A DNA stretch of 64,000 nucleotides from Perkinsela sp. CCAP 1560/9 (GCA_965644495.1 CBFFSA010000010.1:1-64000); one strand, 5' to 3'. Shown: positions 16,260 through 57,575, numbered from the stretch's first letter. Made by a program: numbers and translations. Notes: generated by a model not told the origin, from the sequence alone.

Positions 16260-16287
16260 TAAAACTTTAACTGTCGCGAATTAACAA

Positions 16288-17775
16288 ACTCTCAGTTCCA
16301 CCAACGTGCGATCACTCGAAGCGGCGTTCCTGCACTTACGCGAAACCACAGCCGAGCTCAATCTATGCGTTAACTTTCAAAAATGTGAATTCTTTCAGAA
16401 ATGTGCGTCATGCGAACCCTTTTCATTAGAAAACTTAGGCGTTAATCTTTGCACCGAGTCGATAAAGATCCTAGGAGCCTATATCGGCAAAGACAATGTG
16501 GTAGAAGATCTTCTCCTGCGCAAATTGAACAAGCACAAATGCCTATTTCGTCGCCTTCTTCTCATGGGCCCGAGTAACCTCTCTCTGGCGATTTTGCGCC
16601 GCTGTACAATTCCACGCCAAGACTACCATTTAAGAGTTCACCGCCCGGAGGCTACTCTTTACCTAGCCCAATCTTTCGAGCAGCACATACACGAGGTCCT
16701 GCAGAAATGGTGTGGCGCCGATGTCCAGGCACTCAAGCTTGCAGCGCTCCCGCAAAAACTAGGCGGATTAGGCTTGATTTCTTGCACTCTGAAACAACAA
16801 TATTACTTCGCAGCGGCCCGAGAATCTATTGAAGAGCAATTTGAACCCAATAACGCTCCGGTAGATTCAGAGGGCAGCGGCAAGGTCAAAGCTAAAGCTC
16901 AGAGCCGCGCGGAAAAGGCCCGCAAATTTCTTAAAAAGAACTTGAGCCAAGCGCATGACAAGCAATTAATTGAAGTACAAAAAGACTCAACCTTAACAAA
17001 TATCTTGAAGCGCACCAAGGAAGCTAATTTTCACCTCGAACATACAAGTAACTACGTTAACCCGTATCTTTTTAGATACACGCTCATGATGCGCTTGGGA
17101 ATCGGCGTGTCAAAAGCACCGGCCAAAATGATTTGCCCTGGATGTTCGAATCAAGAATCTCCTTCAACCATCCTTCCCCACGTTGCTGGATGTTCCCGTT
17201 GCTCCGGCATGAACTCTACCCGCAAGCATTCACACATAGTCCGTTACCTCGCAGAGTTATGCTCAAAAGCAGGCCTTCCTAGTGTCATCGAACCGCGCAT
17301 TTACTCTTCGTACCACTGCACAAAATGTAAGTGCACGATTTCCGCAGAAGTCGCCGAGCAACATCCTTGCAAAGCCCGCCGCATTCGTTCCGGCCCAGAT
17401 CTTGCCATCATGTGGCCTCACATCGGTGAGGTGCTCTATGATTTTACAGTGGTCCACACGTGCTGTACTAGCTATGCGAAACAAACCAGCTCTGCCCTCA
17501 TGCAACAGGTCGCCGACAGAAAGTACAAGAAATATGTGGTTGAGAAAGGCGTCGACAGCGATTCATTCAAATGTCTGGCCGCAACAGATTGCGGCCTGCT
17601 ACATGTTGATACAAAGGCCCTATTAAAGGCTCTCTCACAAAGAGCGAAGCTGAACTATGATAACGTGCGCAATGCGTTCCAACTCGAGATTGAGAAGATG
17701 TCAGCTTACACGATAGTATCTCAACTCAGAGACTACATCCCGACAGAGAAATGGATGGGAGGACTTCGGTTGTAA
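16288..17775 (+). pseudogene. 5'-truncated RT thumb-Zn finger-RLE ORF
   Basis: Close paralogue of 10342-11816; begins just after the YxDD position. Confidence 0.85.
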
Positions 17776-18116
17776 GAAGTCAGCGGACACGTCTATCTGG
17801 AATATTTATTTATTTATTCATTTATTTATTTATGAGAAGCGAACCCATGTCACAAGCGAAAAGCATTTCTAGAATGCTTAAATCATAATTCGATGCTCCT
17901 TCTTTCCTATCTCCTCCTTTGACACCCTATATTCCCCCTCTTCCTCATTCATTGAATTCATTCCGTTGCTTGTTTCAAAAAAAAAGTTATCTTAACAAAA
18001 AAATTGTTATCTTAATAAAAATTGTTATCCTGCTTTACTCATAACGGACACCCGTTCGCGATAGGGAGGGATGTATATCTCTCTGGGAGGCTAACAATAT
18101 CTCACTAAAGTTGCTA

Positions 18117-20370
18117 TCAAAAAGTGTCAACGTACGGCAAAATTATAACATAAGAGTTCACACCCCTGGGTGCTCGGCATGTAGTGCAGTGAACTGAGCT
18201 GAATCTTCGAGGCTCTTTCTCGCAAGGAATTCCTGCATTTAGACACATCTTGTGTATGTAGCGAACCAGGGTGTTATGTTTGAATGAGGCATTTATTCCC
18301 TTGCATTGAGTGCATCCTGGTAGATGGGTCAGAACCGAATGTTGGTTGAGTTCAGTTTGGCATCCGGGGCATCGAATTTCTTTCATTGACGATTGGAGGG
18401 GCATTCCTAATCTCGGTAATACCGCTAGCCTAAAAAGATGTGACGGTACCAACTTTGCAGTTGACTGCAGCCAGTCGTAATTTCCTTTGAAGGTTGTGGA
18501 CCTTACTATGTGGGATAGCTTCTGGGATCGTTCGCTCGCTTCATTGGTGTCTGTGCTGTTTCGTATTTCTTCTGACGCACGCACAGCATTTCGATTGACA
18601 ATCTGAGCTGAAAAAGAATTATGGCGCTCGAAAATCGTTTGTCGAGATGCTGCGTAAGCTGCGCGTCGTATCGAATTACATGCAGTAAGACCCAACCCGC
18701 CTTCGCTAACGGGGAGTCGTGCTAGCTCCATTTGCTCTTGGTCCAATGGTCCCAACCAATGTTTCAATACATCTCCTACCTCTTTATCGAACTGAAGTGC
18801 CGAATCTTGAGTATTGTCCGGGGCGTGCACGCGCATGAAGTAAGAGTGTCGGATGTTCACTGATTTGGAGAGAAGTCGGAGTGAAATATTGTTCGGACCC
18901 ATTATCTTGAGGCGTCTAAAAATTTCGTTATGTTTCTCAAGCTTCTGCATCAGCTTCTCTTTGATGGTTGCATTGTTACCTATGTACGCTCCAAGAATCT
19001 TGATCGCTTTTTCTTCTGTCTTCACTCTGCACTGTTCCAGTTTTATAGGTATCTGTGCCCCAGATGCCCCCCCGAACCAGACACATTTGGATGAGGAAAG
19101 AACCAACTTTTTATCCTCGATCAATTCTTTGAAACGGAAAAATGCTGATTCGAGTTGGGCTTTATTGGAAGAGCACAGATTCACATCGTCAATGTACGCG
19201 AAAATTTTGACTTCCGGGAATTCCATTGACATTGTCTCCAAGATTGGTTGCATAAGAGTACAGAAGTAAAGGGTAGCCAACGGTGAGCCCTGTCGCACTC
19301 CAGCTGTGCTCGGTACTACTCCCGCAAGCTGCCCATCTGTTCCGTAATACAACAGTTCAGATTCCCTGGAGTACTCAGCATGAAAGAGGCGTTGGAAAGG
19401 TCTCATCGCTGAAAAAGCAAACACGGCTTTTGCGATGTCAATTCTGGATGGGGTGTTAAAGGCGTTCTTGAGATCGAGCGAAAGAATGCACTGTCCTTTT
19501 TCGTACTTGTTATGCAGTGTGTGCACAATCTTTTCGCACCCAGCACGGGAGAGTACCCCATGCTGTATGGGTTCAAATAATGGCGCTAGCGTGTTTTCGT
19601 ACCGCTGTAGGAGAGTTATTCCTGCAAGCTTTGTGATCACTTCACCCATTGCTACCGGTCTGACTTCTGTTTCTGATTTGCTAATTGCGACGAGGCGTGA
19701 TCGATTTAGTCGATTCATAACTCCATCATTCAAGAAACCGTTGACAAGGTCTTCCACCATGATGACAAGACTGTTGCAGCAGATCTCGTCATCTAGTAGC
19801 AATCGTACTACTATGTCTGTGGTACCAGTCGGGCCTGGGTTAGCTCCTCTCGCCAATCGTCGTCCGGCGCTTCTAAGCTCTTCGGCATTTATCCCTGCAA
19901 TGACAGGGGCATCAGTTGGCAGTGGGAAAGCGCAAGGATGCTGGGGATGTAAAGCTAAAAGTTTTTCTAGTGTCTCTTTGTCAGTCAATTTGCTCCGCTT
20001 AAAGCTTTGGCCCATTATCTTGGCGGCCTTCGTCACGCTTCCCTCAAGGGCTAATCGAGTGGCTCGTTTTATAGCACGTAAGTCGCCCGTTAACTGTTCG
20101 TCTTCTATTGCCTCATGTCCGATAATTATAGGTTTGCGGCGCCGTTTTCTGACGTAGCTCTTTCGCGTCTCAGCCAAAGAGAATTTCATAGCCGACAATG
20201 CACGATGCCAGATTCTGTTTCTTTCAAGATAATCGCTTTGTTGATACATTCTGATTATTTCACGATACACTGCAACCACCCTCGGCGCAAATTCTGCCGA
20301 TATGGTTCGGCAGGTCGGAATGGGAAGATGATCGGTGTCTTGCTCTGTCCATTTGGAAAACGAAAAGTTC
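18117..20370 (-). pseudogene. Internal RT-Zn finger fragment of a CRE-like non-LTR element
   Basis: PGPTG, RPVAMGE, DLKNAFN, GVRQGSPL, YIDD, ILGAYIG, CPGC; both ends missing. Confidence 0.9.
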
Positions 20371-28760: not shown

Positions 28761-29026
28761 GATGCAATCAAGCGGAAACGGGATACGTATGTGACATCCG
28801 GAAAAATTCCCGACTTCGCATTTCAGTGCATCCCAGTGCTGTCCTGCGGCTCTCTTCATCAAAATACGAGATCTCTGTTGCATGTCCTATCCGACGCGAC
28901 TCTCTTAAATTGTCGAGCAACTGAAATGGAGTTCAAGCTCCTACTTCAGGAACTGAATGGGACGGAAGTGTACGCCCAGTTGCGGAACCACTTATCCCCG
29001 GAAGGCAGCAGTAGGTACAGCATTTG

Positions 29027-29638
29027 TTGTTGTTGTTTAACCCGTTTGGCCATGACTGGCTATGGGTTCAGAGTACACCCTAGTTATTTAGTGCTCGTGT
29101 GAAACGGCACCGGGTATTACCGTACTCCGTGGGTGGTACGCTGTCAGTCGCGCGCAGACTTTCCCAGTGGGATGCCGCACTCGCAGATAGACAAGCAATA
29201 CCTGTCAGGTTGCGTGGTCTGACTTGTCATCCGTGACTTCAATGCCCGATGGATTCGCATCCTGGGGCAAAGAAGTAGTGGAACAGTCGTTATATTCTGT
29301 TCCACCACCAGGGATGACTCACGCTAGGGTGTGTGGAGCTTGCGAGGCTCTCTCACCAGCGGGGCTCACAATGGAGCTCGACCAGTGCCCTTCACAATTT
29401 AACAGCATCTGTGTGGGCTCGTTCGGTTCATCCTTCCTGCGAAATACCGCACGAACTCTTACACTTGGTCTTTCACCTTGAGCAACAAGTAACTTTTCTC
29501 TCACAACCGTACATAGTTGATTCAAAGCCTGTGCAGGCAGCGGCTCGGTAGGCGCGAGCTCGTCTGCACCGGGTGACACACTCCGTAAATTCCGTAAAGA
29601 ACGCGTCGATGAAGTCATAGCAACTTTCCTTACGCGAA
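29027..29638 (-). mobile_element. Chimeric insertion: YR gag 5' fragment fused to a (CAA)n-tailed structured element, 15-bp TSD
   Basis: taggtacagcatttg at 29012-29026 and 29639-29653; ~29400-29620 is homologous to gag 2; 29027-29400 is the reverse complement of 32403-32779. Confidence 0.85.
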
Positions 29639-32365: not shown

Positions 32366-32402
32366 GCTAAGAAACTAGGGTAGTCTCCATATGCAAAAAT
32401 TT

Positions 32403-32779
32403 AAATTGTGAAGGGCACTGGTCGAGCTCCATTGTGAGCCCCGCTGGTGAGAGAGCCTCGCAAGCTCCACACACCCTAGCGTGAGTCATCCCTGGTGGTG
32501 GAACAGAATATAACGACTGTTCCACTACTTCTTTGCCCCAGGATGCGAATCCATCGGGCATTGAAGTCACGGATGACAAGCCAGACCACGCAACCTGACA
32601 GGTATTGCTTGTCTATCTGCGAGTGCGGCATCCCACTGGGAAAGTCTGCGCGCGACTGACAGCGTACCACCCACGGAGTACGGTAATACCCGGTGCCGTT
32701 TCACACGAGCACTAAATAACTAGGGTGTACTCTGAACCCATAGCCAGTCATGGCCAAACGGGTTAAACAACAACAACAA
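32403..32779 (+). mobile_element. Structured non-coding element with (CAA)n tail
   Basis: Near-identical inverted copy at 29027-29400; bulged hairpin at 32689-32725; distant relative at 42864-43125. Confidence 0.75.
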
Positions 32780-35700
32780 GAACCTTATCTGTCGCAGGCG
32801 CAATCAGCAGTACCGCCATCGCTATCGTCCCCTCCGGCGACGAAGTCCCCTGCAGCAGATTCCTCGTCGGCCGAAAACGCAATAGAGCTTAGGTTCCCCA
32901 GTCTACTCCCGCTGCCGACCGGAAAAGATGATACAGAAAGAAATTTTCGCATGTCATTCAGTGAGTTGAAAAAGCAGTTGGACGCACGCGCAGAGGAAGA
33001 AAAGAAAACAAAAGAGAAAGCAGCTGAAACGTCACGTAGGCAGTGCGAAGACTCAGTGACCACGGCAATCCCCTCTACCCCTGTACCTTGTTGCCTAAAA
33101 GTTTACGTTATGAAATTAGGCGAGGGCTCTCATTTACGTTAATACCATAAATTGGCCTCCCTTTTCGCCCCGGTGCGCCGCCCTCGCCAACACCCCCATC
33201 GCCACGCGCTTTGCATGGGTCGCCCGGTATCAAGATACCAAGACACTAAACAACTAGGGCATGACACCTCATTCTCCCGGAGGAGGCAAGTCGGGTGTCT
33301 ACATGCTGCGGTTGAGCCTAGGCTCTCGCACTGTAGATTTACTCCCCGCGTGGAGCACCCGCACCGCTACTTACGCGGAAAGTGAGGAGGCCACATCTCT
33401 TCGGAGACAAACGGCCCGGACCCAACAACAACAACAACGGCAATCCCCTCACGCAAACCTCGCATAAAAGTGATCATTGGAAAACAGCGACAAGAAAATC
33501 ACACAACGATAAGCTCAAGTAATGAAGTTCCCCACTCTGAACCATCTTCGCGTCTTCAAACACTCGGTAAGGTTGCTGGAGTGGTCGGAAAGACTGTGGA
33601 ATGGGCTGCTGACACTGCACGGTGTTCCTACAGCCGAGGAGCGTGAGACAAGGGAACGCCAAATTGCAGAAACCGCTCGAGGAAAAGAAAGAAGAACGAT
33701 ATCAAAGTTAGATTGCCTCCCGATCACTACGATAAATACAGAATCTTCAGCGGAACAAACGTTAGGGATGCAGGACGTCAATACCGAGTCTCAGGCAAGC
33801 GTCGTTTGGCCAGGCACTACGACGACTGAGTCGATCACTGCGACGAATGATGAAACTTCAGCCGAACAGCCGACGCAGGACGCAGATGTCGAATGTCAGA
33901 CATACGCCGACTGTTTAACTCCTGAGGACACCCCATTGAGCACGGGAAGGGTTGACGGGTCTACGACACTGCACGAGGTAGTTGACGAAAACAATATCAC
34001 GATGCCGAACTTTGAACTTCCTGCTGAAACAGAGTCTGTCATAGAAGTTGCCAAGGAGGCCGAGATGATAGAGAAGTTGAATAAGTCGATAAACCCAACG
34101 GAGCAGTTTCCACTGGCACCGGATACCATCTGGGATTCATCAAAAACGGCGAAACAAGGGGACTCGTGCTTGATGGCATGGTGCTTCAGCGATTCCTCGC
34201 AGATGAATATATCGAAAGGTGTGGTTAAGTCAGTTAAGAAGCGTTCCGGAATCGGACGGATGTCTCTCCAGTACGAAGGTATAGAAGGGTACAAATGCGG
34301 CGAGCAATTTCGTGGGTTCATTCCTCCAAACTCTAATGTGAGAGTTTATTCAATACAATGGCTAAATCGAAAGGATTCAAAAAGCAGCATTGATGTGGAC
34401 GCTAAAGGAATTCCAAGTAATCAAGGATTTTCTCATACGGAAGCAGACTTGGATTTCGATCCAATGCCAACCATGCGGACTGTCAGTGCAGAGTTTGTGC
34501 CCTGTGTTGTCTCTATCTATCGTGACATAATGCGGGATTACGCAGATTCTTCTTACGACCAACGAAATCAAATCTGGCACAGAACCATGTCGGCAATGAA
34601 ACATTCGTTAGCTACAGTGCGCCATCTCATTGGAAAAAAGCGTCGTCGCCGCCCAATTCAAACTCAGGAGACGAACGCAGGAAACAGTGAAGTGGAGAAA
34701 AAGGCTAAAGATCTGAGAGCAGGCAAAAAAGCGACACGACTGGTTTTGGAAGGAGCGATTAAGAAAGCGACGCGCGTGTTAGATCAAGACATCACCGAAA
34801 CATCATTAGGGGATGAAGAAAAATTGTCTCAATTACAAAAACTACACCCATCTTTACCGATTTCTTTTGAGCTTCCCACCGACGCCCCGAAGGTAGCATG
34901 TATCCCGCCCCATGAACTCCGAGAAGCAGGAAAGAGACTCGCAAAAGGCGCCGCCCCAGGTCCATCCGGTACCACAGAGGCCATCATTCGTCTGCTCTTG
35001 GACGATGAGATCTGTTGCACGAGTCTAAGCCACATGATGTGCGATTTAATTAACGGAATGCTGTCCAAGGATGTAATGCGCAGACTGCGGAGAGCACGCT
35101 TAGTTGCACTCCCTAAAACAGCTCATGCCGTTCGACCGGTGGCAATGGGAGAAATTTTTCTCAAGTTGGCTGGACTAATCCTTCTTCTGCGTAACGAACA
35201 TAAATTTGAAAAGCTTTTCCTGCCGATGCAGCATGGGGTAATGAGTCGCGCTGGCTGCGAGACTATTGTTCACGAACTCAATCGACGATATATGGAAGGG
35301 TGTGCTATCCTCTCGTTGGATATGAAGAACGCTTTTAATAGCCCTTCACGCGGCGAGATTGCAAAAGCAATTTTTGCTTTGAGCGCCCTTCGGCCTTTTC
35401 AGCGACTATTTGTTGCCGAATATGGGACAGCGTCTGAACTCCTCTTTTACGGAAAGAACGGGGAACTGTTTTCAACAGTTGAAAGTTCGGCTGGAGTTCG
35501 CCAAGGGTCGCCGTTGTCGACTCTATACTTCTGCTCCTTTCTTCAGCCAATACTGGAGACAATTGCACAAGAATTTCCCATGCTACATATATACGCTTAT
35601 GTTGATGATATCAATATTGCGTCAACTGAGGAAGATCTTGTTGCAGCTGCCTATGTTCGCCTCAAAGAACTTCTTCTAAGCAAAGAAATCTGCCTTGCCC

Positions 35701-37106
35701 CTCAAAAGTGTGTATGGTTTAGCGGTCTGAACAATATTCGCCTACCCGAAAGTCTAGCGAATGAAGGCGTTCAGATAGCGGAGAAGGCAGTCAAAACATT
35801 AGGAGCCTACGTAGGGGAAGCAGCCCGAGTCAGTGAGCTGCTTCTTGCCAAGCTTGAAAAGCATCTAACGATTTTCGGCGGCTTTGTGACATGGGAGCAA
35901 ACAACGTTTCGCTTCTCCTCCTGTCGCGATGTGTTAATGTACGACATCGATACCATATAAGGGTGCATCGACCGGAAGAAACTTTTGAAATGGCAAAATC
36001 TTTTGACAAGCAAGTGCAAGAAGTTCTTACTGCATGGTTTGGATCGATGACACCAAAGCAAATTGCTTGGGCGCGTCTACCTGTGAAGAGCGGAGGATTG
36101 GGGTTAACGCCCACTGATCTCTTGCGAAAATCGGCGTATGAAGCATCAAGGCACAGTACTCTTGAACGACTTAATTCCTATTCAGTTCGAGCACCCAGTC
36201 TCACGTCTCCATCGCCGGTGGGAAATGAAGGTCAGATAACCCCTCCCCACGATGAATTTGTAACTGAAGCAAAGCTTAACAGAGCCATTAAAGAATCGTT
36301 GAGTAAGGACCCGAAAATTGCACCAGTGCTGAGAGCAGCAAGTGAAAAAGTGAACTCCGCGTGGCTTCATTCTACGGCAAAGTTAGTGCCTTCCAAATTC
36401 TTCACATTAGCTTTGATGCCGTCTTGGTCTAAGCCACCCCCGTATTCCCGAAAGTCTGCAATGCCCAGGATGCCGCACCCTTCTGGATTCTTCATCAGCC
36501 TTTTCGCACATAGCTGGATGCGTCCAGTGTTCCGGAAATAATACAACAATGAAACATAATAATCTGGTGCGTATTATCTATGAACTGTGCATGAAGGCGG
36601 GTGTGCCATGCGAAAGGGAACCTCGACAGTTTACTTCTTATAAATGCTCTACATGCGGGGAATCGTTCCCACAATGGCGAAAAAGTGATCATCAAAAAGT
36701 TTGTAGAAATGCGAGCCTCCATCGGTCAGGACCTGACATTGTAATACATTGGGCAACTGGGGAAATCTTTTATGACCTAACAATAATTCACGAGCTGGCG
36801 CCCACTAATGTACGGAAACGTAGCGGTACCTTGATGAGAGAGGCCATTACGCGCAAGCACAGCACATACGTGGCTTCCGGGATGATACCTCAAGAGCGTT
36901 TCGTATGCCTCCCAGTCCTCTCCGGTGGTGCTATGCATCACGGGCTCCGGCACTTGTTGCATACGTTGGCGGACTGCAGCGGACTTGATAGGGTCCGAAC
37001 ACTGAACGAATTTTCGCTGCGCCTGCAGGAGTTAAATGGGTCGATTGTATTCTCTCAGCTGAGAAATTATTTATCTAATGACGATTCACAAAACATGGGC
37101 CTCTAG
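32780..37106 (+). mobile_element. Near full-length CRE/SLACS-like non-LTR retrotransposon (frameshifted)
   Basis: ORFs 33522-35960 (DMKNAFN, GVRQGSPL, YVDD), 35891-36541 and 36549-37106 (SGPD..FYD RLE). Confidence 0.9.
33076..33436 (+). mobile_element. 361-bp SL-headed SINE-like element with 14-bp TSD
   Basis: TSD acggcaatcccctc at 33062-33075 and 33437-33450; SL remnant ctgtaccttgttg at 33081-33093; hairpin at 33222-33260; (CAA)n tail. Confidence 0.9.
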
Positions 37107-37250
37107 AATTTGACTTTAAAAACAAAAACCTTGGTAACATGTTTACAAATGAGAGAGTAGATACAAAAAAGAAGTGTATATAATATACTGTGAGAATGTT
37201 CATGTATATCATTATTCATTCCGTGTTCAAGTGACTATGATGATGATGAT

Positions 37251-37969
37251 TTGGGCCTTTTGACTCCGAAAAGTTATGGCCCCTCAACTCCCCAAACGGG
37301 CAGTCTGAATACGTCTTGCGACGTATCCGGAGAGACAGCCATAGCAAGCTATGGCTGACCTCCGCTTGGAGAGGAGTTAGTTTTCCAATATTATCCTCCA
37401 ATGAAGGAAGCCAATAATTAACAGCTCCAGGGTAGGAGGGGTTCGCTACTCCCCAGCGTGGTTTAACAAGTTAATCCACTACCCTGCCTAAATTTGAATT
37501 GTTGCGTGGATACTACCCTAGTTTTTTGACGTCTTGTTTTACTGACGCCGGGTAGCTCCACAACATGGGACAGTGAGACAAGGAAGGGGCCGGTGAGAGG
37601 GAGCGGGGCGGGGAGCGCAGTAAATAGCGCAGCGGAGGGAGAGAGCGATGTGGAGAACGGGAAGAGCGGCGGGAACGGCGGCGGGAAGGGTGGCGGGAAG
37701 GGCGGCGGGAAGGACGGCGGGATGCGCGGCGAGGAACCTGGCGGGGAGCGCGGCTGGGAGCGCGGCAGGCAAAGGGGTCATAATGGGGGGCGTCGAGGAG
37801 GGCAACCGGAAGGGCGACCCGGAGGACGGTGCGGGAGGGCGATTTCTTCTTTCGTCCAGGAGGGGTCTCCCCGCGGCGGGGAGAGCGGCGGGGGGGACAA
37901 TGGAAATAGCAGTGGGGGGGGACAAATCAACAAGGTACAGAACCCAACAAGGTACAGAAAACAACAAGG
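37251..37969 (-). mobile_element. SL-headed structured non-coding element
   Basis: In order on the minus strand: stacked SL relics 37969-37928, C-rich repeats, hairpin 37562-37506, junction motif 37488-37421, 130-bp module 37380-37251. Confidence 0.75.
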
Positions 37970-38253
37970 GGCGCAGTATTATTCCCTTCAATAGACCCAA
38001 TGACGGCCACAGGCAGCTTATGGGAAGAACCCTATGAAATAAACAAACCGGAAATTTTGGCGGTCGAGCGCGCCTTACATACGTTTGAGGCAAGTGACTA
38101 TACAGGGGGGTAAAACAGTAAGAGAGATCGATCTGAAGATTTTTGACGGGTGTGTTGAAGTAATTTATTTTATTTATTATAAAATGGATCTTGGGAATTT
38201 TTTTTTTTACATTTTAACAGGGTAATTCATCTTTACAAGGGCATAAAATCCGC

Positions 38254-38580
38254 TACCTTGTTGGTCCCTTGTCGACTTTTCTGCCCCACCCACCAGCCCA
38301 TCTGGTACCTTGTTCTTGTTTTGATTCTGTACCTTGTTGCTTGTTGTTGACTTTTGTTAAGACCTATCTACCCCATGTACCCCTTCCCCCCTTCACCCCC
38401 CTTTCACCGCGCCTTTCGCAGACTGCCGGCCGTGCTCCCCACCGCCCTCCCCGCCGTGTTCCCCGCCGTGCGCCCCGCCGTTCAGCCCGCCGTGCGCCCC
38501 GTCGTGCTCCCCGCAGTGCGCCCCGCCGTTCTCCCCGTCGTGCGCCCCGGCGTGCACCCTGACGCCGTACCCCCTTTGCC
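38254..38580 (+). mobile_element. 5' part of another SL-headed element
   Basis: SL relics at 38254-38263, 38305-38314 and 38325-38339, then (ccccgccgtg)-type repeats. Confidence 0.6.
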
Positions 38581-38630
38581 CGTATACCCCCTTTTTGTTT
38601 AATACCCCCTTTTTGTTTAATACCCCCTTT

Positions 38631-39847
38631 GGGTACGAGGACACTTCCGTGAGTACTCATCGAAACGCCCACGTGTCAAAACGAAAATCATCGAAACGAA
38701 AGAAACTCATCGAAGGTGATTTTAATTACTTTTGAGGTGGTAGCTGCATTTTCGACTCGGGAGCAAACTCAGCACAACCTGGACATACACGAACTGACGG
38801 AAGCAAAGTACGTGCAGCAGCTTCGGCCCCAACCAAGGGGCTAAAAATAAGTCTGTCATCCCAGGCACCAGGAGTTCGTAATTCCTCTGGAGTGCGAGGT
38901 AACTCTTCTTCTTCCTCTTGTTCTTGAGTGCGACGCATTTCGCTGTCTACGAAACGCACAAAACTATTCAAAAGAGCTTCGCGTGCACATGATGTATTGG
39001 GCCTTTTGACTCCGAAAAGTTATGGCCCCTCAACTCCCCAAACGGGCAGTCCGAATACGTCTTGCGACGTATCCGGAGAGCCAGCCATAGCAAGCTACGG
39101 TTGACCTCCGCTTGGAGAGGAGTTAGGTTACAGCTAGGGAGGTGAGGTGCGCTATACCCCTGCGCCTTAGGTAATGCAAATAAGGCGCCCCTTGACCAAA
39201 AAAAACCACTCTATCTTTTGAGGGTGGATAAAAAAAACACAAACACATTCCAAAGATTAGCCCGAATGGCACCCACCCTAGTTTCTTAGTACCTTGTTAT
39301 ATTCGGTACCGGGCGGTGCCACCCATTCTACGTTGCCAGAATGACATCCACCCTAATTATTTAGTGCCTCGTTTTACTGGCACCGGGTAGTGTCATCCAG
39401 GTCTCGAAGTATAGGAAAACAAATACGCAATCCTGCGGAAGTGCCAGACATAGGTTCTCAGTGCGCGACCCGCGCGCTGGAGCGCGCGGGTCGCCAAAAA
39501 ATATAATTCTGTCCCAGGGCTACGCTCACAGTTGGGCCTTGCTCGCAAACGGGGGCTTTTGCCTCCAGAAGTGGGCTTCGCTCAAAGTTGGGCCTTGCCT
39601 CCAGACACGTAAACTAGGTGTCGTAGTATAGGAAAACAAATACACAAACCTGCGGAAGTGGCAGACACAGATTCTCAGTGTCGCCGCTTTCTTATTTTCA
39701 TGTTCTCGATTTTTTTCTTTCCAAAGCAATTAAAATCACCTTCGATGAGAAGATTGACGTTTCGATGAGTCACCCTGTGACACGTAGGCACTTCGATGAG
39801 AAATCATCGAAGTGTCTCAAAAACTCACGGAAGTGCCCGTGGAGCGC
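38631..39847. mobile_element. ~1.2-kb element with imperfect long TIRs inside the 18-bp satellite
   Basis: ctcatcgaaggtgattttaatt (ends 38728) is inverted at 39729; cacttccgtgagt also inverted; satellite on both sides in the same orientation. Confidence 0.6.
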
Positions 39848-39994
39848 CCCCTTTTTGTTTAATACCCCCTTTTTGTTTAATACCCCCATTTTGTTTAATA
39901 CCCCCTTTTTGTTTAATACCCCCTTTTTGTTTAATACCCCCTTTTTATTAGTATACGATTTGAAATTTAGACGACTTTTATTATACGTGATGAG

Positions 39995-40225
39995 TGGTGG
40001 CCCTTCGGGGCACATAGTATGATTACTATGATCTTAATAATAAATTATCGGAGGGAATGTTTTATTTGATCTAGTTATTATTGAATTTTCTAGTTTGATC
40101 GGATTATATCAAATATTATTTCTTGTGTTATAGAGACATTCAATTTCAAACAGTTACAAAATCGTTCCCACCCACCAACCCCCAGCCATTTCGCGGGTTG
40201 GTGGGCAATGCCCATTCGTAAGTTA
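39995..40225 (+). repeat. YR-element terminal junction segment
   Basis: tggcccttcggggcacata...cccacccaccaacccccagccatttcgcgg.ttggtgg parallels 31919-32153. Confidence 0.7.
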
Positions 40226-40410
40226 CTTGAATTTGGAATAAGGATTATACTATAGTATGAAAGACGAATATGAGGGAAGGCGTATTAAGGAATAAGGGAT
40301 TTAGAGTAAGTGTATTTTGTGAATGTTGATTTTATTCAAGTTTCATGTGTTATTTACCTAATTTATTGATTCTATGTCGGGAAGGGAAAAGACGACGTGA
40401 ATTTCTGTAT

Positions 40411-41280
40411 AATGCCCCCTTTTTGTTTAATACCCCCTTTTTGTTTAATACCCCCTTTTTGTTTAATACCCCCTTTTTGTTTAATACCCCCTTTTTGTTT
40501 AATACCCCCTTTTTGTTTAATACCCCCTTTTTGTTTAATACCCCCCTTTTTTTTAATACCCCCCTTTTCTTTAATACCCCCTTTTTGTTTAATATCCCCT
40601 TTTTGTTTAATACCCCGTTTTTGTTTAATACCCCCTTTTTGTTTAATACCCCCTTTTTGTTTAATACCCCCTTTTTGTTTAATACCCCCCTTTTTGTTTA
40701 ATACCCCCTTTTTGTTTAATACCCCCTTTTTGTTTATACCCCCTTTTTGTTTATACCCCCTTTTTGTTTAATACCCCCTTTTTGTTTAATACCCCCTTTT
40801 TGTTTAATACCCCCTTTTTGTTTAATACCCCCTTTTTGTTTAATACCCCCTTTTTGTTTAATACCCCCTTTTTGTTTAATACCCCCCTTTTTTTTAATAC
40901 CCCGCTTTTCTTTAATACCCCCTTTTTTTTAATACCCCCTTTTTGTTTAATACCCCCTTTTTGTTTAATACCCCCTTTTTGTTTAATACCCCCTTTTTGT
41001 TTAATACCCCCTTTTGTTTATATCCCCTTTTTGTTTAATACCCCCTTTTTGTTTAATACCCCCTTTTTGTTTAATACCCCCTTTTTGTTTAATACCCCCT
41101 TTTTGTTTAATACCCCCTTTTTGTTTAATACCCCCTTTTTGTTTAATACCCCCTTTTTGTTTAATACCCCCTTTTTGATTAATACCCCCTTTTTGATTAA
41201 TACCCCCTTTTTGATTAATACACCCTTTTTGTTTAATACCCCCTTTTCGTTTAATACCTCCTTTTGTTTAATACCCCCTT
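40411..41280. repeat. 18-bp minisatellite (AATACCCCCTTTTTGTTT)n
   Basis: Direct inspection; shorter arrays at 38583-38630 and 39848-39945. Confidence 0.95.
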
Positions 41281-41629
41281 TCCCCTCCCCATCTCCCGGA
41301 GAAGCGAAGGGACTAGATCCTTTTTTCTAGGCAAGACCCTTCGTTTCTCCACGCTAGGAGCGCTCCTGGACTAACAATCCGGAGCAGTGGAGTTTTTAGC
41401 GAGTGAGCTACCAGAGTCTCTGACGCAATCCGAGATTCAACGAAACTCTGGTATGCAAGTCTCGCACTACCCTGTAATGGGGTGTCTCCCCTGAGGTGCG
41501 TGGGTGGAAACACCCGTTCATTTGCCACTGGAAGGTGGCCAGCTCACTCGACCAAGAAAAGCCTGCCGGTTGGACACCGGGTGGCGGTCGAGGCGGTTGA
41601 GGCAAAGATTTTCTCCATGTAGGAAAAAA

Positions 41630-42740
41630 AAACCCCGACGCCGTTCCCCCCGTGCTCCCTGCTGCCCTCCCCGCTGTCCAACCGCCTCACTCCCACCTCG
41701 CTCCCCGCCTTGATCTCCGCCGCGCCCATGGTGTGGATCTACCCGGCGTCAACACAACAAGACGTCAAGAAACTAGGCTAGTATCCACAAAAAATTTAAG
41801 GCAGGGTCGTGGATTAACTTGTTAAACCAAGCTGGGGAGTAGCGAACCCCTCCTACCCTGGAGCTGTAATCATTGGCTTCCTTTTATAGGAGGATAAGTC
41901 GGATGTGTGCCTTCTATGGTTGAGGTACTCTCATGTCGGCACAGATGCTTCGAGCATCGGCATCCGCACTAGGGAGCCATATCTCCTCGGAGACAAACTG
42001 CTCTGTGAACCAACCAACCAACCGCTTTTTGTTAAACACCCCCTTTTTGTTGTACCTGTACCTTGTTCCCTCACTCCCTGCTTCGCTCTCTGCCGAGCTC
42101 CCCGCCCCATGTACCCCTTCACCCCCGTTCGCCGTGCCCTTCGCCGTCTTTCCGCCGTGCTCCCCGCCGTGCCCCCCGCCGCGCTCTCCCACCGCTCTCC
42201 CGCCGCTCTCCCGCCACTCTCCCGCCGCGCTCCCGCCGCGCTCCCGCCGCTCTCCCACCGCTCTCCCGCCGCGCTCCCGCCGCTCTCCCGCCGCTCTCCC
42301 GCCGCTCTCCCGCCACTCTCCCGCCGCGCTCCCGCCGCTCTCCCGCCGCTCTCCCGCTGCTCTCCCGCCGCTCTCCCGCCGCGCTCCTGCCGCGCTCCCG
42401 CCGCGCTGCCCGCCTCACTCTCCGCTTCGCTCTCCGCCGCGCTCCCCACCTCTTTCTCCATCGCCATAGTGTGGACCTACACGGCGTCAACACAACAAGA
42501 CGTCAAGAAACTAGGGTGGCATCCGCACAAAAAAATTAAGGCAGGGTCGTGGATTAACTTGTTAAACCACGCTGGGGAGTAGCGAACCCCTCCTACCCTG
42601 GAGCTGTAATTATTGGCTTATAGGGGGATAAGTCAGATGTGTGCCTTCTATGGTTGAGGTACTCTCATGTCGGCACAGATGCTTCGAGCATCGGCATCCG
42701 CACAGCGCACCTAGGCTGAAACTAGGGAGCCATATCTCTC
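41630..42740 (+). mobile_element. Two tandem copies of the structured non-coding element
   Basis: Hairpin + junction motif at 41733-41867 and 42469-42607; SL relic at 42056-42067; (ccgccgctctc)n between. Confidence 0.75.
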
Positions 42741-43367
42741 TGTCCCAACCCAACCCAACCCAACCCACCAGCCCATAAACATACCCCCTCTATGCCCCCC
42801 TTCACCCCAGAGGAAACTCCCTTGTTTCCCCCACCGTGCACCAGCTCCTGATAAGATAAGATATCCCGTTTGGCCGACTAGGGCTATGGGATCGTAGCAG
42901 GAATCTCCGTTACAGAGATACCTCTACGTCGGCCTGAGTGTCTTTTTAAGTGGGGCTGAGCATCCTCTCCGTTTCCGGAAGAGTACAGGCGTCAGAATCT
43001 CACCACCGAGGACTCATCAAGGGACGTTGAGTGAGGACGCACTCGTTCACTAGAGATCCCGGTGGGACGACCAGTGCCCTGAACGGGCCTAGTTATTTAG
43101 CGCTTTGTTTTGCTAGCGCCGGCCTTAGCTCGGGAGGCTGGGATCGCTAAGTCCCATCGTCCGGTGTTAATCGGACGCCCCGACCTTATAATCAATAGAT
43201 ATGCCCATCATCACATTGTCCGATACATGTACTTAAGCGTCGTAACTTACAGACGCTTCCGGCTCTACAGTAGCTAAATAAAACGACGCCGTTGATTCGG
43301 AAGACCATAGTGATGAGGGTGAAGAGTAGTGTGATGCTTCTGGCTCACCTGGAACTGATTTTGGCCA

Positions 43368-44612
43368 GGGGGGCGTTCGATGATTACTCACCGAACGGGC
43401 AGCCGTTCGATGAGTACTCACTGAACGGGCAGCCCCTTCGGTGAGTAACGTCCCGTTCGATGAAACTCACGGAATGGGCTGTCCGTTCCGTGAGTAATTC
43501 ATTGAATCGACGGTCAACCACAAAAAGAACGTTTAATGCTTTTCCAGATGCGACAGTTGCGTCCTAGTTTATGTGTATGGAGGTAAAGCCCAACTGTGAG
43601 CGTAGCCCACTTCTGGAGGCAAAAGCCCCCGTTTGCGAGCAAGGCCCAACTTTGAGCGTAGCCCTGGGACATAATTATATTTTTTGGCGACCCGCGCGCT
43701 CCAGCGCGCGGGTCGCGCACTGAGAACCTATGTCTGGCACTTCCGCAGGATTGTGAACTCGTTTTCCTATGCTGCGACACCTAGTTTACCTGTCTAGAGG
43801 CAAGGCCCAACTGTGAGCTGAAAAGGGGGGTACGAATACAGCTATCTGCCGTAAAGATTCAGTTTCTGTACAGCCTCCTCAAGTCGATCGAATTCCATGA
43901 CGCGCGTTTAATGCACGTTTTTCCCCCAAAATGTTGCAGCAAATTATTTTTCTCAAGCAACAGGGCGTCCCGTTCGATGAGTACTCTTCGAACGGGTCGT
44001 TCTGCAAATTGATGATGATTAATAGGCATTATATCTCCGAGGAGATGTTACCTCCCTAGAACAAGCCCCCCCTTATCGCTTGCTAGGAGCTGTGCCACGC
44101 AGCACGCAAGTCAAATCCGAAGATTTGACCAGATCGAGCGCGAGCAGCCAGCTTATCTTTTTTTAACCCCTTTTATATACTACAAGAAAATATTCTTTAT
44201 TAAAAAACACTTCTTTTGAAGTGAAAAAACACTCCAAAGATTATGCTGAATGACACCCGCCCTAGTTCCTTAGTACCTTGTTATAACCGGTACCGGGCGG
44301 TGTCATTCTCACGCTGCGATGTCTGGGTGACCGTTACCCTAGTTAATTTGTGCCTTGTTTTGCTGGCACCGGGTAGTGTCATCCTCGGGACCTTGATCGT
44401 ACCCACCCTAGGTATGTAGCGTCTTGTTGTGCGACGCCGGGTGAGTTAGCTAGGGAAGCTGGGGTCGCTACGCCCCATCATCCGACAAAAGTCGAATGCC
44501 CTGACTGATTCTGCCCTGACTGGTTCTGCAAATTACTCACCGAAGGGGCTGCCCGTTCAGTGAGTACTCATCGAACGGGCTGCCCGTTCGGTGAGTACTC
44601 ATCGAACGCCCC
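43368..44612. mobile_element. ~1.25-kb non-autonomous TIR element
   Basis: ~80-bp near-perfect inverted repeats at 43368-43448 and 44532-44612; ~43550-43750 is an inverted homologue of ~39430-39620. Confidence 0.75.
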
Positions 44613-44751
44613 CCCCCCTCCCCCTGATTTTTTTATCCCCTCGAGCCTGTAACGTATGTCGGGAAGTAAAAACGGTTCCTCGTCGCTCGTGAAGGAATCC
44701 TCAGAAAAATCAGAGGGGCTCCAATCTTCATCTGTTTCACACTCACACACA

Positions 44752-47630: not shown

Positions 47631-48816
47631 GTCAAACCTCTATGATTAACAGAATTCTCAACAATATAATTTAAGTACTGTTACGCACCTAGCTACATAC
47701 CCTGGAATTAGCTCAGAATAAATTAAGCACAACTAAACATTTTTCTCTTCCATGGCTATTTTTACCCCATAATGATATTTTTACCCCTTAAAGTCTCTTC
47801 GTTAAACGCGGTGGTTGTTTTCAACTTAGAAGTCACTCATGCTGCGCGCTTCGCGTTGAAAACTACCACCGCGTTTAACGAGGAGACTAAAAAAGAAAAT
47901 TCGGCTTCGAAAGCTGGAGAAAACGGAAAGATTATAGCCAAAAACAGCCGATTTTCGGGTAAAAATGGGGTGATTTTTGGATATTTTGCTCTCAGAGCAC
48001 TAAATCCGACATTCGCGTTAGGGAAATCACTCGTAGGCATGAGTCAAAGCCTCCCGGACGTATTGGGTAGAGAATACGACTCCAATCACACCATTCTTTG
48101 GACACAAAAAGATCCCTTGGGGTCCGAAAAATACATTTTCACCTTTTTTGGTCAAAAATGGGTCATATTAGGAGGCATACCACGGCTACAAGAAGGGATA
48201 TCTTGCGAAAACAAAGGCGTAGAAAGCTAGTATAGGCCCCACACTAACAAAATACAATAGGGGAAAGGAATTCGAAAAAAATACTTTTTTTACCATTTTT
48301 TTCGCCAAGTTGAATTTTTTTTCATTTTTTTTCCCGAAAAAACCCGAACTTGTCGGACACGTCCTGCGCATACGAAGGGGGGTCACCCCCGGGTGGGGGG
48401 GTGGAAAATGCGTGCCGAAACCCCGACAACCCCTTCCGCGCTTTTTTTCTAAAAATATTTTTTTTCAAAAAAAATTCATGCGGTATGCCCCCCCTGGACC
48501 CCCCCCCCCCTGGAGCCCCCAATGGCCCGATTATTTTGAAAATTTTTGGACCACCGGAGCCCTTTTTATATATTTTTCTTCTATTAAATTTTCTTCTATT
48601 ATATGCAGGGGGGATCAGCTAATGCTGGGGGGGTCTAAAATTTGTAAAACTTGGCCAATTTTGGAAAATAATAGCGCATTCGAGAGATCTCACACAACCC
48701 TCCTGTGGAGGATATATCGGTTACCGGATAAATTCCATTTTTTTAAAATGGCAGGTGGCTTAAAAACGTCAATTGCAAATTTTTCTAGAAATTTGCAAAA
48801 AAATGAAATGACAAAC

Positions 48817-50473: not shown

Positions 50474-52035
<1,562 letters not shown>

Positions 52036-53200: not shown

Positions 53201-53657
53201 CAGGATGCAGGGTGGACGCCCTCGAAGGGGAAGTTTCGAAGATTACGAAGTTTTTCTATGAAAAATTTTGACACCTGCGGGCACTCAGGCGTTCCAATTT
53301 CGCTTCTCGCTTGTTCGAGCAAGCGACGACATGCAGTTCCCAATGACCTTTCATGTCGTTCTCGAGCTTTTTCCTTCTTAATATCTTCCTTTTGACGGCG
53401 TTCGCTACGGGTTGAACTCCGCGAGAACGAACAAGTGGAATTTAAGTAAGACGGGAAACGAGACCCTCGACGAGTTCGACGCGGCCGCTCTGGGGAGGGG
53501 GAAGGGACCCTGTGCATCGAACTTCGCCGGCGGCGGCTCGTCGGACATTCGCGAGGTTTTTCCATGGGGTCACTCTGGGAGGAAGTGCCGGAAGACCGGT
53601 CTCGCCAATCATACCCTTCGTAGTAATGCCCCTCGTAGTACAGTGTACGTAAGTAGT

Positions 53658-54216
53658 ATTTTCCCCGGGCACAAGTCCCGATGTCTTCCCCGGGCACACG
53701 TCCCGATGTCTTCCCCGGGCACAAGTCCCGATGTCTTCCCCGGGCACACGTCCCGATGTTTTCCCCGGGCACAAGTCCCGATATCTTCCCCGGTCAAAAA
53801 TCCCGATATTTTCCCCGGGCACAAGTCCCGATGCCTTGCCCGGGCACATGTCCCCATATCTTCCCCGGGCACAAATCCCGATATCTTCCCCGGTCAAAAA
53901 TCCCGATATTTTCCCCCGGCACACGTCCCGATATCTTCCCCGGGCACAAGTCCGGATATCTTCCCCGGGCACAAATCCCGATGTCTTCCCCGGGCACACG
54001 TCCCGATATCATCCCCGGGCACAAGTCCCGATATCTTCCCCGGGTACAAGTCCCGATATCTTCCCCGAGCACAAGTCCCGATATCTTCCCCGGGTACAAG
54101 TCCCGATATCTTCCCCGGGCACAAGTCCCGATATTTTCCCCGGGCACAAGTCCCGATATCTTCCCCGGGCACAAGTCCCGATATTTTCCCCGGGCACAAG
54201 TCCCGATATTTTCCCG
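53658..54216. repeat. 25-bp minisatellite (CCCCGGGCACAAGTCCCGATATCTT)n, ~22 copies
   Basis: Direct inspection; 25-aa period in translations. Confidence 0.95.
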
Positions 54217-54779
54217 TGGCAAAAATCCCCACAACTTCCCGGGGTATATGTCCCGATAACTTCTTCCACCCTCCTCCCCCGGACCATGTGTATACGTTTA
54301 TGTATGCACGTGGTCCTTCCCCAGGCTTGGGACTGGGTAATGCGGAGTTATGGAAGTCACATAAGTCGGGTATGTGAAGCCAACTTTATCCGAATGCTTT
54401 GGAGATTCCCAAAATAAAGAAAAAAGTTTGGGACTTTTGTTTCATCTAACCAAATAAATTGTTCTGTTTTCGAAAAAGTGGTGACAAATAAGTGGGGGGG
54501 GCACAATATATTTTCAGACCCCTGTTTTTTGGATAAAAACGCTCGATTTTTCGGCGAAAATTGGGAAATTTTACCCCGAATTTGGGGCGTTTTTGATGCC
54601 TTACCAGTAGGGGTAGGAGGCGAATCTATAAAAACAAACGTCGTAGAATGGTAGCTGAGGTCTCAAGCTCTGAAAATACGTTTTAGGAGTCGATTTTGGA
54701 AACATATTTTTACTTTTTTTTGGGTCAATTGTTTTTTGATAATCCTAAAAATTTCAAAAATTTTGACTTTGTCGGACCC

Positions 54780-55775: not shown

Positions 55776-56232
55776 GAAAAGGGTGAAACAAGGGGGATGG
55801 TGGAAAGTGCGTACATGGTGCCAATGACATCGGTAGCGAAGCAAGGGTCGATGACGGAGGGGAAGAGAGTGAAGGAATTGTTCTCGAGCAAAGATTTTTT
55901 TCATGAAGCCTGTGTAACACTAATAAACAAGAAAGTGCTTAAAGTAAAAAATATAAAAAATGTGTATACCTAAATACTAGTTACTAATGTAACTGATTCA
56001 TAGGATACTATAATATTATTTCGAGTTTGTTGAACGCCCATAGTAGAATATGCCTGGAGAAGCACTCCGAGGACTTACACGACACCGAGTAAAAACCACA
56101 GAAAAACCCAGTTCCGTGGTAAAAACTAATATTACAATATGAACCGTTGCTGTGGACGGAAATAAAGCTCGGGAGGTGAGGTTCGCTAAGCCCCAACATT
56201 TGCTTGACAATGTCCCTGACCCCATAAAGTTT

Positions 56233-56760
56233 TCAACTGTTAACGGACTCATCTTCAAAGTTCAAATCATTCACTAAATTCGCAATTATAGAACAATCAG
56301 AATCAGAATCATCTTCCGACACGTTCTCCACGGACACTTCTCCAAGGGTTTCTTCGGAATTTGTTGTTCGTTCAGGGGGTAGAGGAATTCCTGGACCACG
56401 AGGCCACCAGGACCTGGAAAGATTTTTTCTGACAAGCACATTGTCAACCCTAGAAAAAGTTGCAGGGTAGAATAACAAAGAGCATAAGTTGTTAACAACA
56501 TGCAATCCGCATTCATTTAGCATAGGCTCCTGTTGTAAGATCTTTTCATATTTAACACGAATGTTCCCACTTTCTTGCCCAAGAAGAGGAGTTGCCCGTT
56601 CCAAGAATAGTTTTAAAAAGTCGCTTCGGGCGAATGGAGAATACGCCTCATAGCTGTCATACACTGTGAGCAGGGACCTTCGGAGTTCTACCAAAATAAA
56701 GTGATTGTTAAAGAAGAGAACGGCAACAATGCTAAAACTGCTCTGTACGTACACGAGTAC
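56233..56760 (-). pseudogene. Ulp1/C48-like protease fragment
   Basis: NNHFILV, VYDS, QQ....ECGLHV give the H-D-Q-C order. Confidence 0.65.
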
Positions 56761-57575
56761 GTACTCGCATGTACTCGGCAAATCGTACGTACACTCCGTG
56801 CTCGCTAAGGTATGTCCATAGAACGGTTTCAAAAATTTGGGATGGAGTTGTAAATATAGTACTACTGTATAAACCTAGGGACACGATAAGTCACCCCCCT
56901 CTAAAATTTGTGTAAAGTCTTCGTTTGGGCTAATTTTTATTGCATTTTGCAGATCTCGGTGACGCTTGTTTGCGCATATCATATACAGTAGTGTTCAGCC
57001 TCTTTTACCCCCCCCTACAGGTCTTGCATTTTGTTCGATTTTGGAAATATTTTGTATGGGGCTGTTTTTCAACCCAATCGTTCCGAATCCGAGGTCCTTT
57101 TCACTCGTGGACACCTGTATCATACCTAAACCGGGAAAAAAACCGCAAAAAAGTCGATTTGTTTTCCACAGAGTACATTTTTTTAAAAATTGGTACATTT
57201 GTTGGTGATTCACGACGAAGAAACACCGCCCCCTGTGCTTACCTTCCTGCCTCGTGTGCCCCGAGAAGCGCACGGCACTCGCGATCGATTGAGAGCGACT
57301 TAAGTCCTATAAGACACTCGAAAAATTTCATAAACTTAGCCCCGGGTCCATCATTGAAACTTTTCGCTTTTTTCTGAAGATTAACCGGAAACGTTTAGGA
57401 ATGCCTTCCGGGACTATAGTAAACTTTTTCTTTCGGTCAAGGAGGCTAAAGTGCATATGGCTAAATACTAGAGATTACTTTGCACTCCTTTTCCACGTCT
57501 TCTAACCTACTTTACTACTGTTCCTCATCCGAAACATTCAAAAAAATGAACCCAAAAAAGTTGTAATTAGCTTTT

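Follow-up and report, generated by a model that had tools for sequence, protein, structure and literature searches.

The stretch of DNA analyzed here, referred to throughout as the window, comprises 64,000 nucleotides (nt) from Perkinsela sp. CCAP 1560/9 (GCA_965644495.1, CBFFSA010000010.1:1-64000). It is eukaryote-like and rich in transposable elements, with several reverse-transcriptase open reading frames (ORFs), DDE transposases, long interspersed nuclear elements (LINEs), and an intronless gene for serine hydroxymethyltransferase, a transcript of which was found in JGI sample 3300017035. The same locus is present on contig ctg3871l (L001) of ENA assembly ERZ24900291 at 97-99.5% identity. 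The window also harbors dispersed copies of a compact, structured RNA motif that a first-pass annotation had taken for a candidate new self-cleaving ribozyme. The results presented below indicate that this motif is probably a class 1, subclass-1b-type exoribonuclease-resistant RNA (xrRNA), a fold previously characterized in viruses, positioned at the 5' terminus of short, non-autonomous retroelements of the type lacking long terminal repeats (non-LTR).

All five sites noted in the first pass were recovered on the strands given there, along with two that it had missed, copy D within its reported range and copy E beyond it. A pattern derived from the copies matches these seven sites and no others, with 0.00 matches expected from 100 shuffles of the window. 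In the list below, P1 to P3 are helices, S1 and S4 are the strands that form the pseudoknots Pk1 and Pk2, and R1, R2, and R3 are covariance models, R1 built from five viral IMG/VR sequences only, R3 from eight viral sequences only, and R2 being a joint model.

37421-37489, minus strand: copy A1, comprising S1 AGG, C, P1 AGGG, P2, P3 GGGG/CCCC, loop AGU-AGC-GAA, junction uCCUa, P1', and S4 GCUGU (R1, 23 bits, E=0.001-0.007; R3, 22.3 bits, E=0.0011)
39130-39197, minus strand: copy B, with S1 GGU pairing to ACC, loop UAU-AGC-GCA, extended Pk2 UAUAGC:GCUGUA, and a G-U pair in P3 (R3, 7.6 bits; R2, 42.8 bits)
41799-41867, plus strand: copy A2, found by the pattern and by the virus-only models R1 and R3
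42539-42607, plus strand: copy A3, with the most intact P2 among type A copies, found by the virus-only models R1 and R3
43124-43185, minus strand: copy D, with S1 GGU pairing to GCC, P3 GGGA/UCCC, and extended Pk2 CUUAGC:GCUAAG (R3, 10.8 bits)
44447-44506, minus strand: copy C, with S1 AGU pairing to GCU and loop CGU-AGC-GA (R3, 14.8 bits, E=0.1)
56166-56221, minus strand: copy E, the most virus-like copy (R3, 30 bits, E=1e-5)

Further contigs of the same organism, fetched via relatives of the reverse transcriptase that neighbors the motif, yielded a sixth sequence type, F (contig L007, 12820-12904, minus strand), and three decayed copies on contig L015. Outside this organism, the copy-derived pattern had no matches in IMG/VR and three in JGI metagenomes, all in coding-like sequence and dismissed as chance; a single match in GTDB genomes, which was not inspected, is presumed to be chance as well. 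Copy E begins ~10 nt past the point at which a same-strand ORF of 199 aa (56233-56832, minus strand) reaches its stop codon, much as flavivirus xrRNAs lie just past a stop codon. Read by eye, this ORF carries a His / Asp / Gln...Cys-Gly pattern that recalls Ulp1-type (C48) cysteine proteases, and it has no Pfam match at E<=0.1.

Every type folds as a three-way junction in minimum-free-energy predictions, as the first-pass annotation had proposed, and its description of a hairpin that differs in sequence yet always pairs is likewise borne out, as P2 forms 5-13 bp in each type while its sequence is unrelated from type to type. P1 and P3 are 92-96% paired across a 15-sequence alignment. In addition to the pseudoknot described in the first pass, there is a second, Pk1, in which the 3 nt ahead of the invariant C upstream of P1 (S1) pair with 3 nt of the junction between P3 and P1 (AGG:CCU in type A, GGU:ACC in types B and E, AGU:GCU in type C, GGU:GCC in type D, and GGC:GCC in type F). 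Pk2 joins a triplet of the P3 loop to the 3 nt (S4) that follow an unpaired A after P1, which corresponds to the pairing of loop UAGC with GCUA or GCUG suggested previously. Type F supports this pairing with a compensatory change, its triplets being UGC:GCA where all other types have AGC:GCU (UUGC with GCAA when the flanking pair is included), and Pk2 can be extended to 5-6 bp in types A, B, and D. The single A.C mismatch is confined to a decayed copy.

The strand on which the motif is read follows from G-U wobbles, which occur in P3 of B and E, in P2 of C, D', and F, and in Pk1 of C and D, and which, reading the sequences by eye, are also found on the same strand in the extended Pk2 of A and B. 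The virus-only models agree, as they match the motif sites solely on this strand. The P3 loop (L3) has a 3-3-3 layout in A, B, and E, 3-3-2 in C and D, and 4-3-3 in F, with the U preceding the Pk2 triplet invariant in all 14 aligned sequences. The C after S1 and the unpaired A before S4 are also invariant (columns C8 and A68 of alignment A4), although the base triple itself is only putative.

Covariation across the sequences supports both pseudoknots. In alignment A6, for which 15 sequences were fitted to the nested helices only and both pseudoknots were added by hand outside the model, 94.4% of cells are paired, compared to 82.8 +/- 1.4% after shuffling, with none of 500 shuffles reaching the observed value. 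The covariation score is 0.395, compared to 0.156 in shuffles, and controls with slid registers reach 71.6% paired at most. All three pairs of Pk1 vary on both sides, with 91% of cells paired despite a one-column misalignment of type A, and Pk2 is 100% paired, with two of its three pairs covarying. When registers were instead set from conserved anchors by a rule-based parse of 13 viral and eukaryotic sequences, 38 of 39 Pk1 cells and 39 of 39 Pk2 cells were paired; for the six eukaryotic types, each pseudoknot was paired in 18 of 18 cells (joint shuffle p=0.003). Both MAFFT and model-based alignments shift the type A junction and the type F loop by one column each, so the pair counts derived from these tools are conservative, and type F was scored only by the rule-based parse.

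The resulting architecture is almost entirely that of the subclass 1b xrRNAs known from Tamana bat virus (TABV), insect-specific flaviviruses, pestiviruses, pegiviruses, and hepaciviruses (PMC7527734, bioRxiv 10.1101/2020.06.25.172429). These are three-way junctions with a P1 of 3-5 bp that has non-Watson-Crick pairs at its base, a variable P2, a P3 of 4-8 bp, an L3 of 3-3-3 (or 4-3-3) with a U before the Pk2 strand, a Pk1 of 2-3 bp, an S4 preceded by A, and a base triple that involves a conserved C (PMC7527734, bioRxiv 10.1101/2020.06.25.172429). In the viral structures, the RNA encircles its own 5' end, and this ring is a mechanical obstacle at which 5'-3' exonucleases of the Xrn1 type stall; no catalysis is reported in these papers. 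The Perkinsela motif shares the three-way junction, the 3-bp pseudoknot between S1 and the junction, the invariant C after S1, the variable P2, the short P1 with non-standard basal pairs, a P3 of the GGGG/CCCC type, the unpaired A before S4, and an 8-10 nt loop composed of 3 nt, the Pk2 triplet, and G-A/C-(N), with a U ahead of the triplet. Type A in particular, AGG-C-AGGG-[P2]-GGGG-AGU-AGC-GAA-CCCC-uCCUA-CCCug-gA-GCU, is a near match to the validated pestivirus and pegivirus constructs, AGG-C-AGGG-[P2]-GGGG-CUU-GAC-GAA-CCCC-CCUA-CCCG-A-GUC, and a validated hepacivirus construct is nearly alike as well (Table S3, PMC7527734). The motif differs from its viral counterparts in its Pk2 triplet (AGC:GCU, or UGC:GCA in F), in the extension of Pk2 in A, B, and D, in a loop whose 5' side is not always pyrimidine, in the spacing between P2 and P3 considered below, and in location, as the viral RNAs reside in 3' untranslated regions (UTRs) whereas the motif is found within a eukaryotic genome, where it occupies the 5' end of mobile retroelements.

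This likeness is also detected by profile. With R1, copies A1-A3 and E are the four best matches in the window, all full length and on the strand given above, at E=0.001-0.011 with filters off, and R3 ranks E first, followed by type A at 21-22 bits (E ~1e-3) and then by C, D, and B at the scores listed above. Types A and E therefore have profile support that is independent of this genome, such support is weak for C, and B, C, D, and F are linked to the family through homology within the genome. An additional R3 match at 48383-48442 (minus strand, 16 bits) is a false positive caused by runs of G and C.

The viral examples came from two pattern scans of IMG/VR. They include a pestivirus-like genome (L026), the motif region of which is nearly identical to the tested Norway rat pestivirus element, a pegivirus-like genome (L037), and a hepacivirus (L024); the first two were assigned by their single long ORF, a 3'-terminal motif, and a motif region near-identical to Table S3 constructs, and the third, like L028, L039, L043, and L044, by Pfam scans. 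No Rfam family matches the motif, but this negative is uninformative because Rfam also misses an experimentally validated pestivirus xrRNA of the same type. Rfam 15 fails on the viral xrRNAs of all seven of these contigs, the best match in the pestivirus-like genome (L026, 12480-12983) reaching 15 bits against a gathering score of 50, and that to the insect-specific flavivirus Ra/Rb repeat family. Rfam 15 is thus blind to this subclass, and screens based on cmscan will miss subclass 1b. Because the family is not usably represented in Rfam, it was missed by cmscan. A match to a known family was the refuting condition set in the first-pass annotation, and by that condition the claim of a new class falls.

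The scans also revealed subclass-1b-type folds in four IMG/VR RNA-virus contigs assigned outside the Flaviviridae on the basis of Pfam domains: L028 at 4398-4457, L039 at 3559-3609, L043 at 2256-2312, and L044 at 2734-2786 and 2792-2840. RdRP_2 is encoded in L028, RdRP_1 in L039, and RdRP_4 in L043, with S-domain coat proteins in L039 and L043, while L044 has no Pfam match and bears its two xrRNA folds in tandem. In L028, L039, and L044, the fold separates the replicase ORF from a downstream ORF, which in L039 encodes a coat protein, and this position suggests an exonuclease-made subgenomic messenger.

The link with retroelements anticipated in the first-pass annotation is substantiated by the sequences surrounding the motif, which form short elements, several of them flanked by target site duplications (TSDs). 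Those delimited in the window are the following.

44011-44522, minus strand: C element, a non-autonomous retroelement of ~500 nt with the 12-bp TSD GTTCTGCAAATT at 43999-44010 and 44523-44534
42849-43185, minus strand: D element, ~335 nt, consisting of xrRNA D, one bulged hairpin, a body, and a (CUUAU)2 tail
38988-39197, minus strand: B element, consisting of xrRNA B, a body of ~140 nt, and a short AUACAUCAU tail
37237-37489, minus strand: downstream part of the A1 element, consisting of xrRNA A1, a 37-nt linker, a B-type body, and an (AUC)4 tail at 37237-37250

On its own strand, the C element begins with a few extra nucleotides at its 5' end, followed by xrRNA C and three bulged hairpins, after which come a further hairpin with U6, the body, and an (AUC)n tail. 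An independent second C insertion on L001 (17508-18005), with an 11-bp TSD (ACGTATCCGGT) and a different tail, is missing from the window, and a second D copy on L015 (12019-11161) has ends identical to those of the window D and a 10-bp TSD (CTTCGCCTCT). Overall, the C element is present at three sites and the D element at two, with TSDs of 12, 11, and 10 bp. The bodies of A1 and B are 95% identical, although their heads differ. No empty-site copy was found for the LINE that bears the L001 insertion.

In the three TSD-flanked insertions, the xrRNA occupies one end of the element, accompanied by a few irregular extra nucleotides, while the other end is a microsatellite that varies between insertions, being (AUC)n, (AAAAUC)n, or (CUUAU)n. 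These termini fit the pattern of 5' and 3' junctions expected from target-primed reverse transcription. The position of the 5' end is also consistent with exonuclease trimming: past its TSD, the L001 copy of the C element begins 6 nt before P1, and the B element begins 5 nt before P1, as judged by where homology ends after a U8 run, while in mosquito-borne flaviviruses Xrn1 is reported to stop 5-6 nt before P1. The elements resemble short interspersed nuclear elements (SINEs) in their TSDs, simple-repeat 3' tails, and dispersed copies, but the head is an xrRNA where a SINE would have a tRNA-, 7SL-, or 5S-derived head with an RNA polymerase III promoter. ARAGORN identified no tRNA genes, and Rfam showed no 7SL or 5S likeness and no small-RNA match. 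In 220 kb of this genome, no LINE 3' end was found to resemble the element bodies. The (GAU)n tail of the nearby LINE is the complement of the (AUC)n tails.

The proximity of the motif to a bulged hairpin, described in the first pass as invariable, holds for six of the seven copies, at distances of 2-79 nt, and not for copy E, which has no such hairpin nearby. The bulged-hairpin family has 12 members in all, nine of which lie within ~190 nt of xrRNA copies in a constant relative orientation.

44260-44442, minus strand: three bulged hairpins directly 3' of xrRNA C
37516-37553, 39276-39318, 39351-39388, 41741-41778, 42479-42516, and 43087-43123: other bulged hairpins
29078-29115, 32688-32725, and 33222-33259: bulged hairpins without a nearby xrRNA

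On the xrRNA strand, each reads ACCCGG, stem, a loop of the ACAACAAG type, stem, ~6 nt, and CUAGGG, and a G-U pair in the stem of the hairpin at 37516-37553 favors placing that hairpin on the xrRNA strand. Two of the three that lack an xrRNA lie in an inverted repeat of 100% identity (29024-29402 and 32401-32779).

Several other repeats adjoin or interrupt the elements. The A1 tail adjoins the (GAU)n end of a plus-strand LINE (33522-37106), and two LINE copies, 74% identical to each other, end in (GAU)n, each tail-to-tail with the (AUC)n tail of the A1 or F element (window 37107-37250; L007 12647-12720), an arrangement suggesting that the microsatellite tail served as an insertion target or as a site of priming. 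The second D element on L015 is split inside its bulged hairpin by an insert of ~530 bp (11399-11928) with terminal inverted repeats CCGGGTGTTACTTAATTACGG ... CCGTAATTAAGTAACGCCCGG, which is probably a miniature DNA transposon. On L001, a 4.4-kb insertion (14308-18739), missing from the window at 49443/49444, carries a reverse-transcriptase ORF that is itself broken by an extra C element, indicating recent mobile-element activity in this population. Palindromic repeats of the GAGTACTCATCGAACGGGC/GCCCGTTCGGTGAGTACTC type, with weak microRNA-like Rfam matches (E 0.07-8), are found at 43366-43480, 43960-44000, and 44534-44618, and the C element is inserted within one of them. There are also long minisatellite arrays with units of 18, 11, 8, and 25 bp at 40327-41260, 42116-42467, 51459-51926, and 53557-54381, and the 18-bp unit TTTAATACCCCCTTTTTG additionally flanks the xrRNA region at 38532-38653 and 39810-39985.

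Collectively, these data favor the interpretation, to which we assign a probability of roughly 70% based on sequence analysis, that the motif is a subclass-1b-type xrRNA heading short, non-autonomous non-LTR retroelements. Its most likely role would be to halt 5'-3' decay mechanically, thereby protecting, and perhaps defining, the element RNA at its 5' end. The element RNA would be made from its own start or within longer transcripts, an exonuclease attacking it at the 5' end would halt a few nucleotides before P1, and the protected RNA, comprising the xrRNA, the body, and the microsatellite tail, would survive to be reverse-transcribed into new sites. We infer both the exonuclease resistance of the motif and the enzyme responsible for the attack, and in this scheme it would be trimming, as opposed to transcription initiation, that sets the 5' end of the element. 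The broader proposition, that these retroelements carry the Flaviviridae-type ring fold as their 5' head so that the retrotransposition template has its 5' end set and protected by a cellular 5'-3' exonuclease, and represent a natural, functional family of class 1 xrRNAs outside of viruses, seems to us somewhat better than an even proposition.

Several points weigh against this interpretation. All of the copies come from one organism and comprise six sequence types, and copies within a genome are related by descent. Types A and F have a bulged hairpin upstream of the motif, which therefore does not begin the repeated unit but falls inside it. The orientation of the elements is deduced from tails, junction features, and wobbles. 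With the virus-only models, B and D are at noise level and are tied to the family solely via the other types, and the E-values are rough, having been obtained with a short calibration. Subclass 1b is defined, relative to subclass 1a, by zero nt between P2 and P3, and the TABV xrRNA is intolerant of insertion there (PMC7527734, bioRxiv 10.1101/2020.06.25.172429). Most types of the motif have 1-2 unpaired nt at this position according to the predicted helix ends and so lack this defining feature of the subclass; in C, D, and E, one of these nucleotides is able to join P3.

Among the alternatives, the one that survives best, though we regard it as unlikely, is that the copies are virus relics with no role in the host, either retro-copied from Xrn1-trimmed subgenomic RNAs similar to the subgenomic flavivirus RNAs (sfRNAs) or captured as fragments, in both cases from RNA viruses that had infected this organism, with the fold merely inherited. 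An sfRNA begins at its xrRNA just as these elements do, the C element, in which repeated hairpins come after an xrRNA, is laid out like a viral 3' UTR, and the fold is present in diverse environmental RNA viruses, including L028, L039, L043, and L044 from outside the Flaviviridae. Inheritance of the fold does not, however, readily account for six diverged types in a single genome that retain both pseudoknots via compensatory changes, or for a single body of ~140 nt that is joined to head A in one element and to head B in another. Other repeats of this genome also have the microsatellite tails and bulged-hairpin modules, no remnant of a viral protein was seen beside the copies, and there have been several insertions, one of them polymorphic.

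Alternatively, the motif could be a structured head that serves a different purpose at the 5' end, for instance as a promoter element or as a site to which the reverse transcriptase or some other protein binds, and that resembles an xrRNA without blocking an exonuclease. SINE heads usually carry promoters, head types swap on one body in these elements, and the viral models recognize B and D poorly, all of which this reading would accommodate. We nevertheless consider it quite improbable, as no likeness to tRNA, 7SL, or 5S was found and what selection keeps is precisely the set of features that form the ring in solved xrRNA structures, namely both pseudoknots, the layout of the loop, the invariant C, and the unpaired A. 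Both this reading and that of virus relics are possible explanations that fit the diversity of the types and their compensatory changes less well than does exonuclease stalling.

Finally, a new self-cleaving ribozyme, in which the junction and pseudoknot would cleave to free the 5' end of the element as HDV-like (hepatitis delta virus-like) ribozymes do, accords with the structured, conserved, and pseudoknotted nature of the motif and its position at a retroelement 5' end, but is very improbable given that none of the ribozyme families in Rfam (hammerhead, HDV-like, twister, twister-sister, pistol, hatchet, hairpin, VS, and hovlinc) matches, whether at the gathering score or with the threshold relaxed to E<=10 and search windows of 91 nt, that the topology, with S1 paired to the junction and the loop to the 3' tail, is unlike HDV, twister, pistol, hatchet, or hammerhead, and that the xrRNA fold, a non-catalytic mechanical block in the literature, covers every conserved feature, by profile as well as architecture for types A and E. 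An HDV-like threading attempted by eye had the wrong topology because two hairpins fall inside its P1. Other readings by eye were also rejected: a T-arm or B box resembling that of a tRNA, if read from the opposite strand, fits only two of five types, with the wobbles favoring the other strand; a resemblance of copy D, on the opposite strand, to 7SL/Alu sequence returned nothing from Rfam, the one check made; and an apparent poly(A) tail after copy B on the plus strand is an A-run homologous to an internal run of the C element.

Having favored an xrRNA on these grounds, it is useful to consider how such an element would compare with known systems. HDV-like ribozymes are present at the 5' ends of non-LTR retrotransposons, including R2, RTE, and L1Tc/NARTc. 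Like the motif described here, they are compact, double-pseudoknotted RNAs at the extreme 5' end of a retroelement that are kept in new copies, and they are thought to define the 5' end of the element when it is co-transcribed with upstream sequence. They differ in topology and in the lack of any sequence or profile match, and also in that they cut their own chain, whereas an xrRNA only stops a cellular exonuclease. The sfRNAs, and the coding subgenomic RNAs derived from plant-virus xrRNAs, are stable RNAs with a 5' end set by exonuclease stalling, as would be the case for these elements. Plant-virus xrRNAs have a different fold, and here, in contrast to the viral decoy or messenger, the protected RNA would be the template for retrotransposition.

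As of a 2021 review, xrRNAs had been characterized in viruses only, and the question 'xrRNAs within eukaryotic genomes?' was posed as open (PMC8374639). In the literature searched to 2026, we found no retroelement described as carrying a natural xrRNA. The fold is already known, and its occurrence as the head of a retroelement in a cellular genome is unreported in that literature. If the copies resist Xrn1, they would represent the xrRNA fold at work in a cellular mobile element and a second, non-catalytic route for defining retroelement 5' ends beside the HDV-like ribozymes. They would also offer structure-function studies six variants that diverged in nature and bear compensatory changes, and would provide a tie between the evolution of RNA viruses and that of retroelements. 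Given that Rfam cannot currently detect subclass 1b, other genomes may hold copies that have gone unnoticed. The existence of such an xrRNA family outside of viruses would imply either that this RNA module has been exchanged between RNA viruses and retroelements or that the fold is much older and more widely spread.

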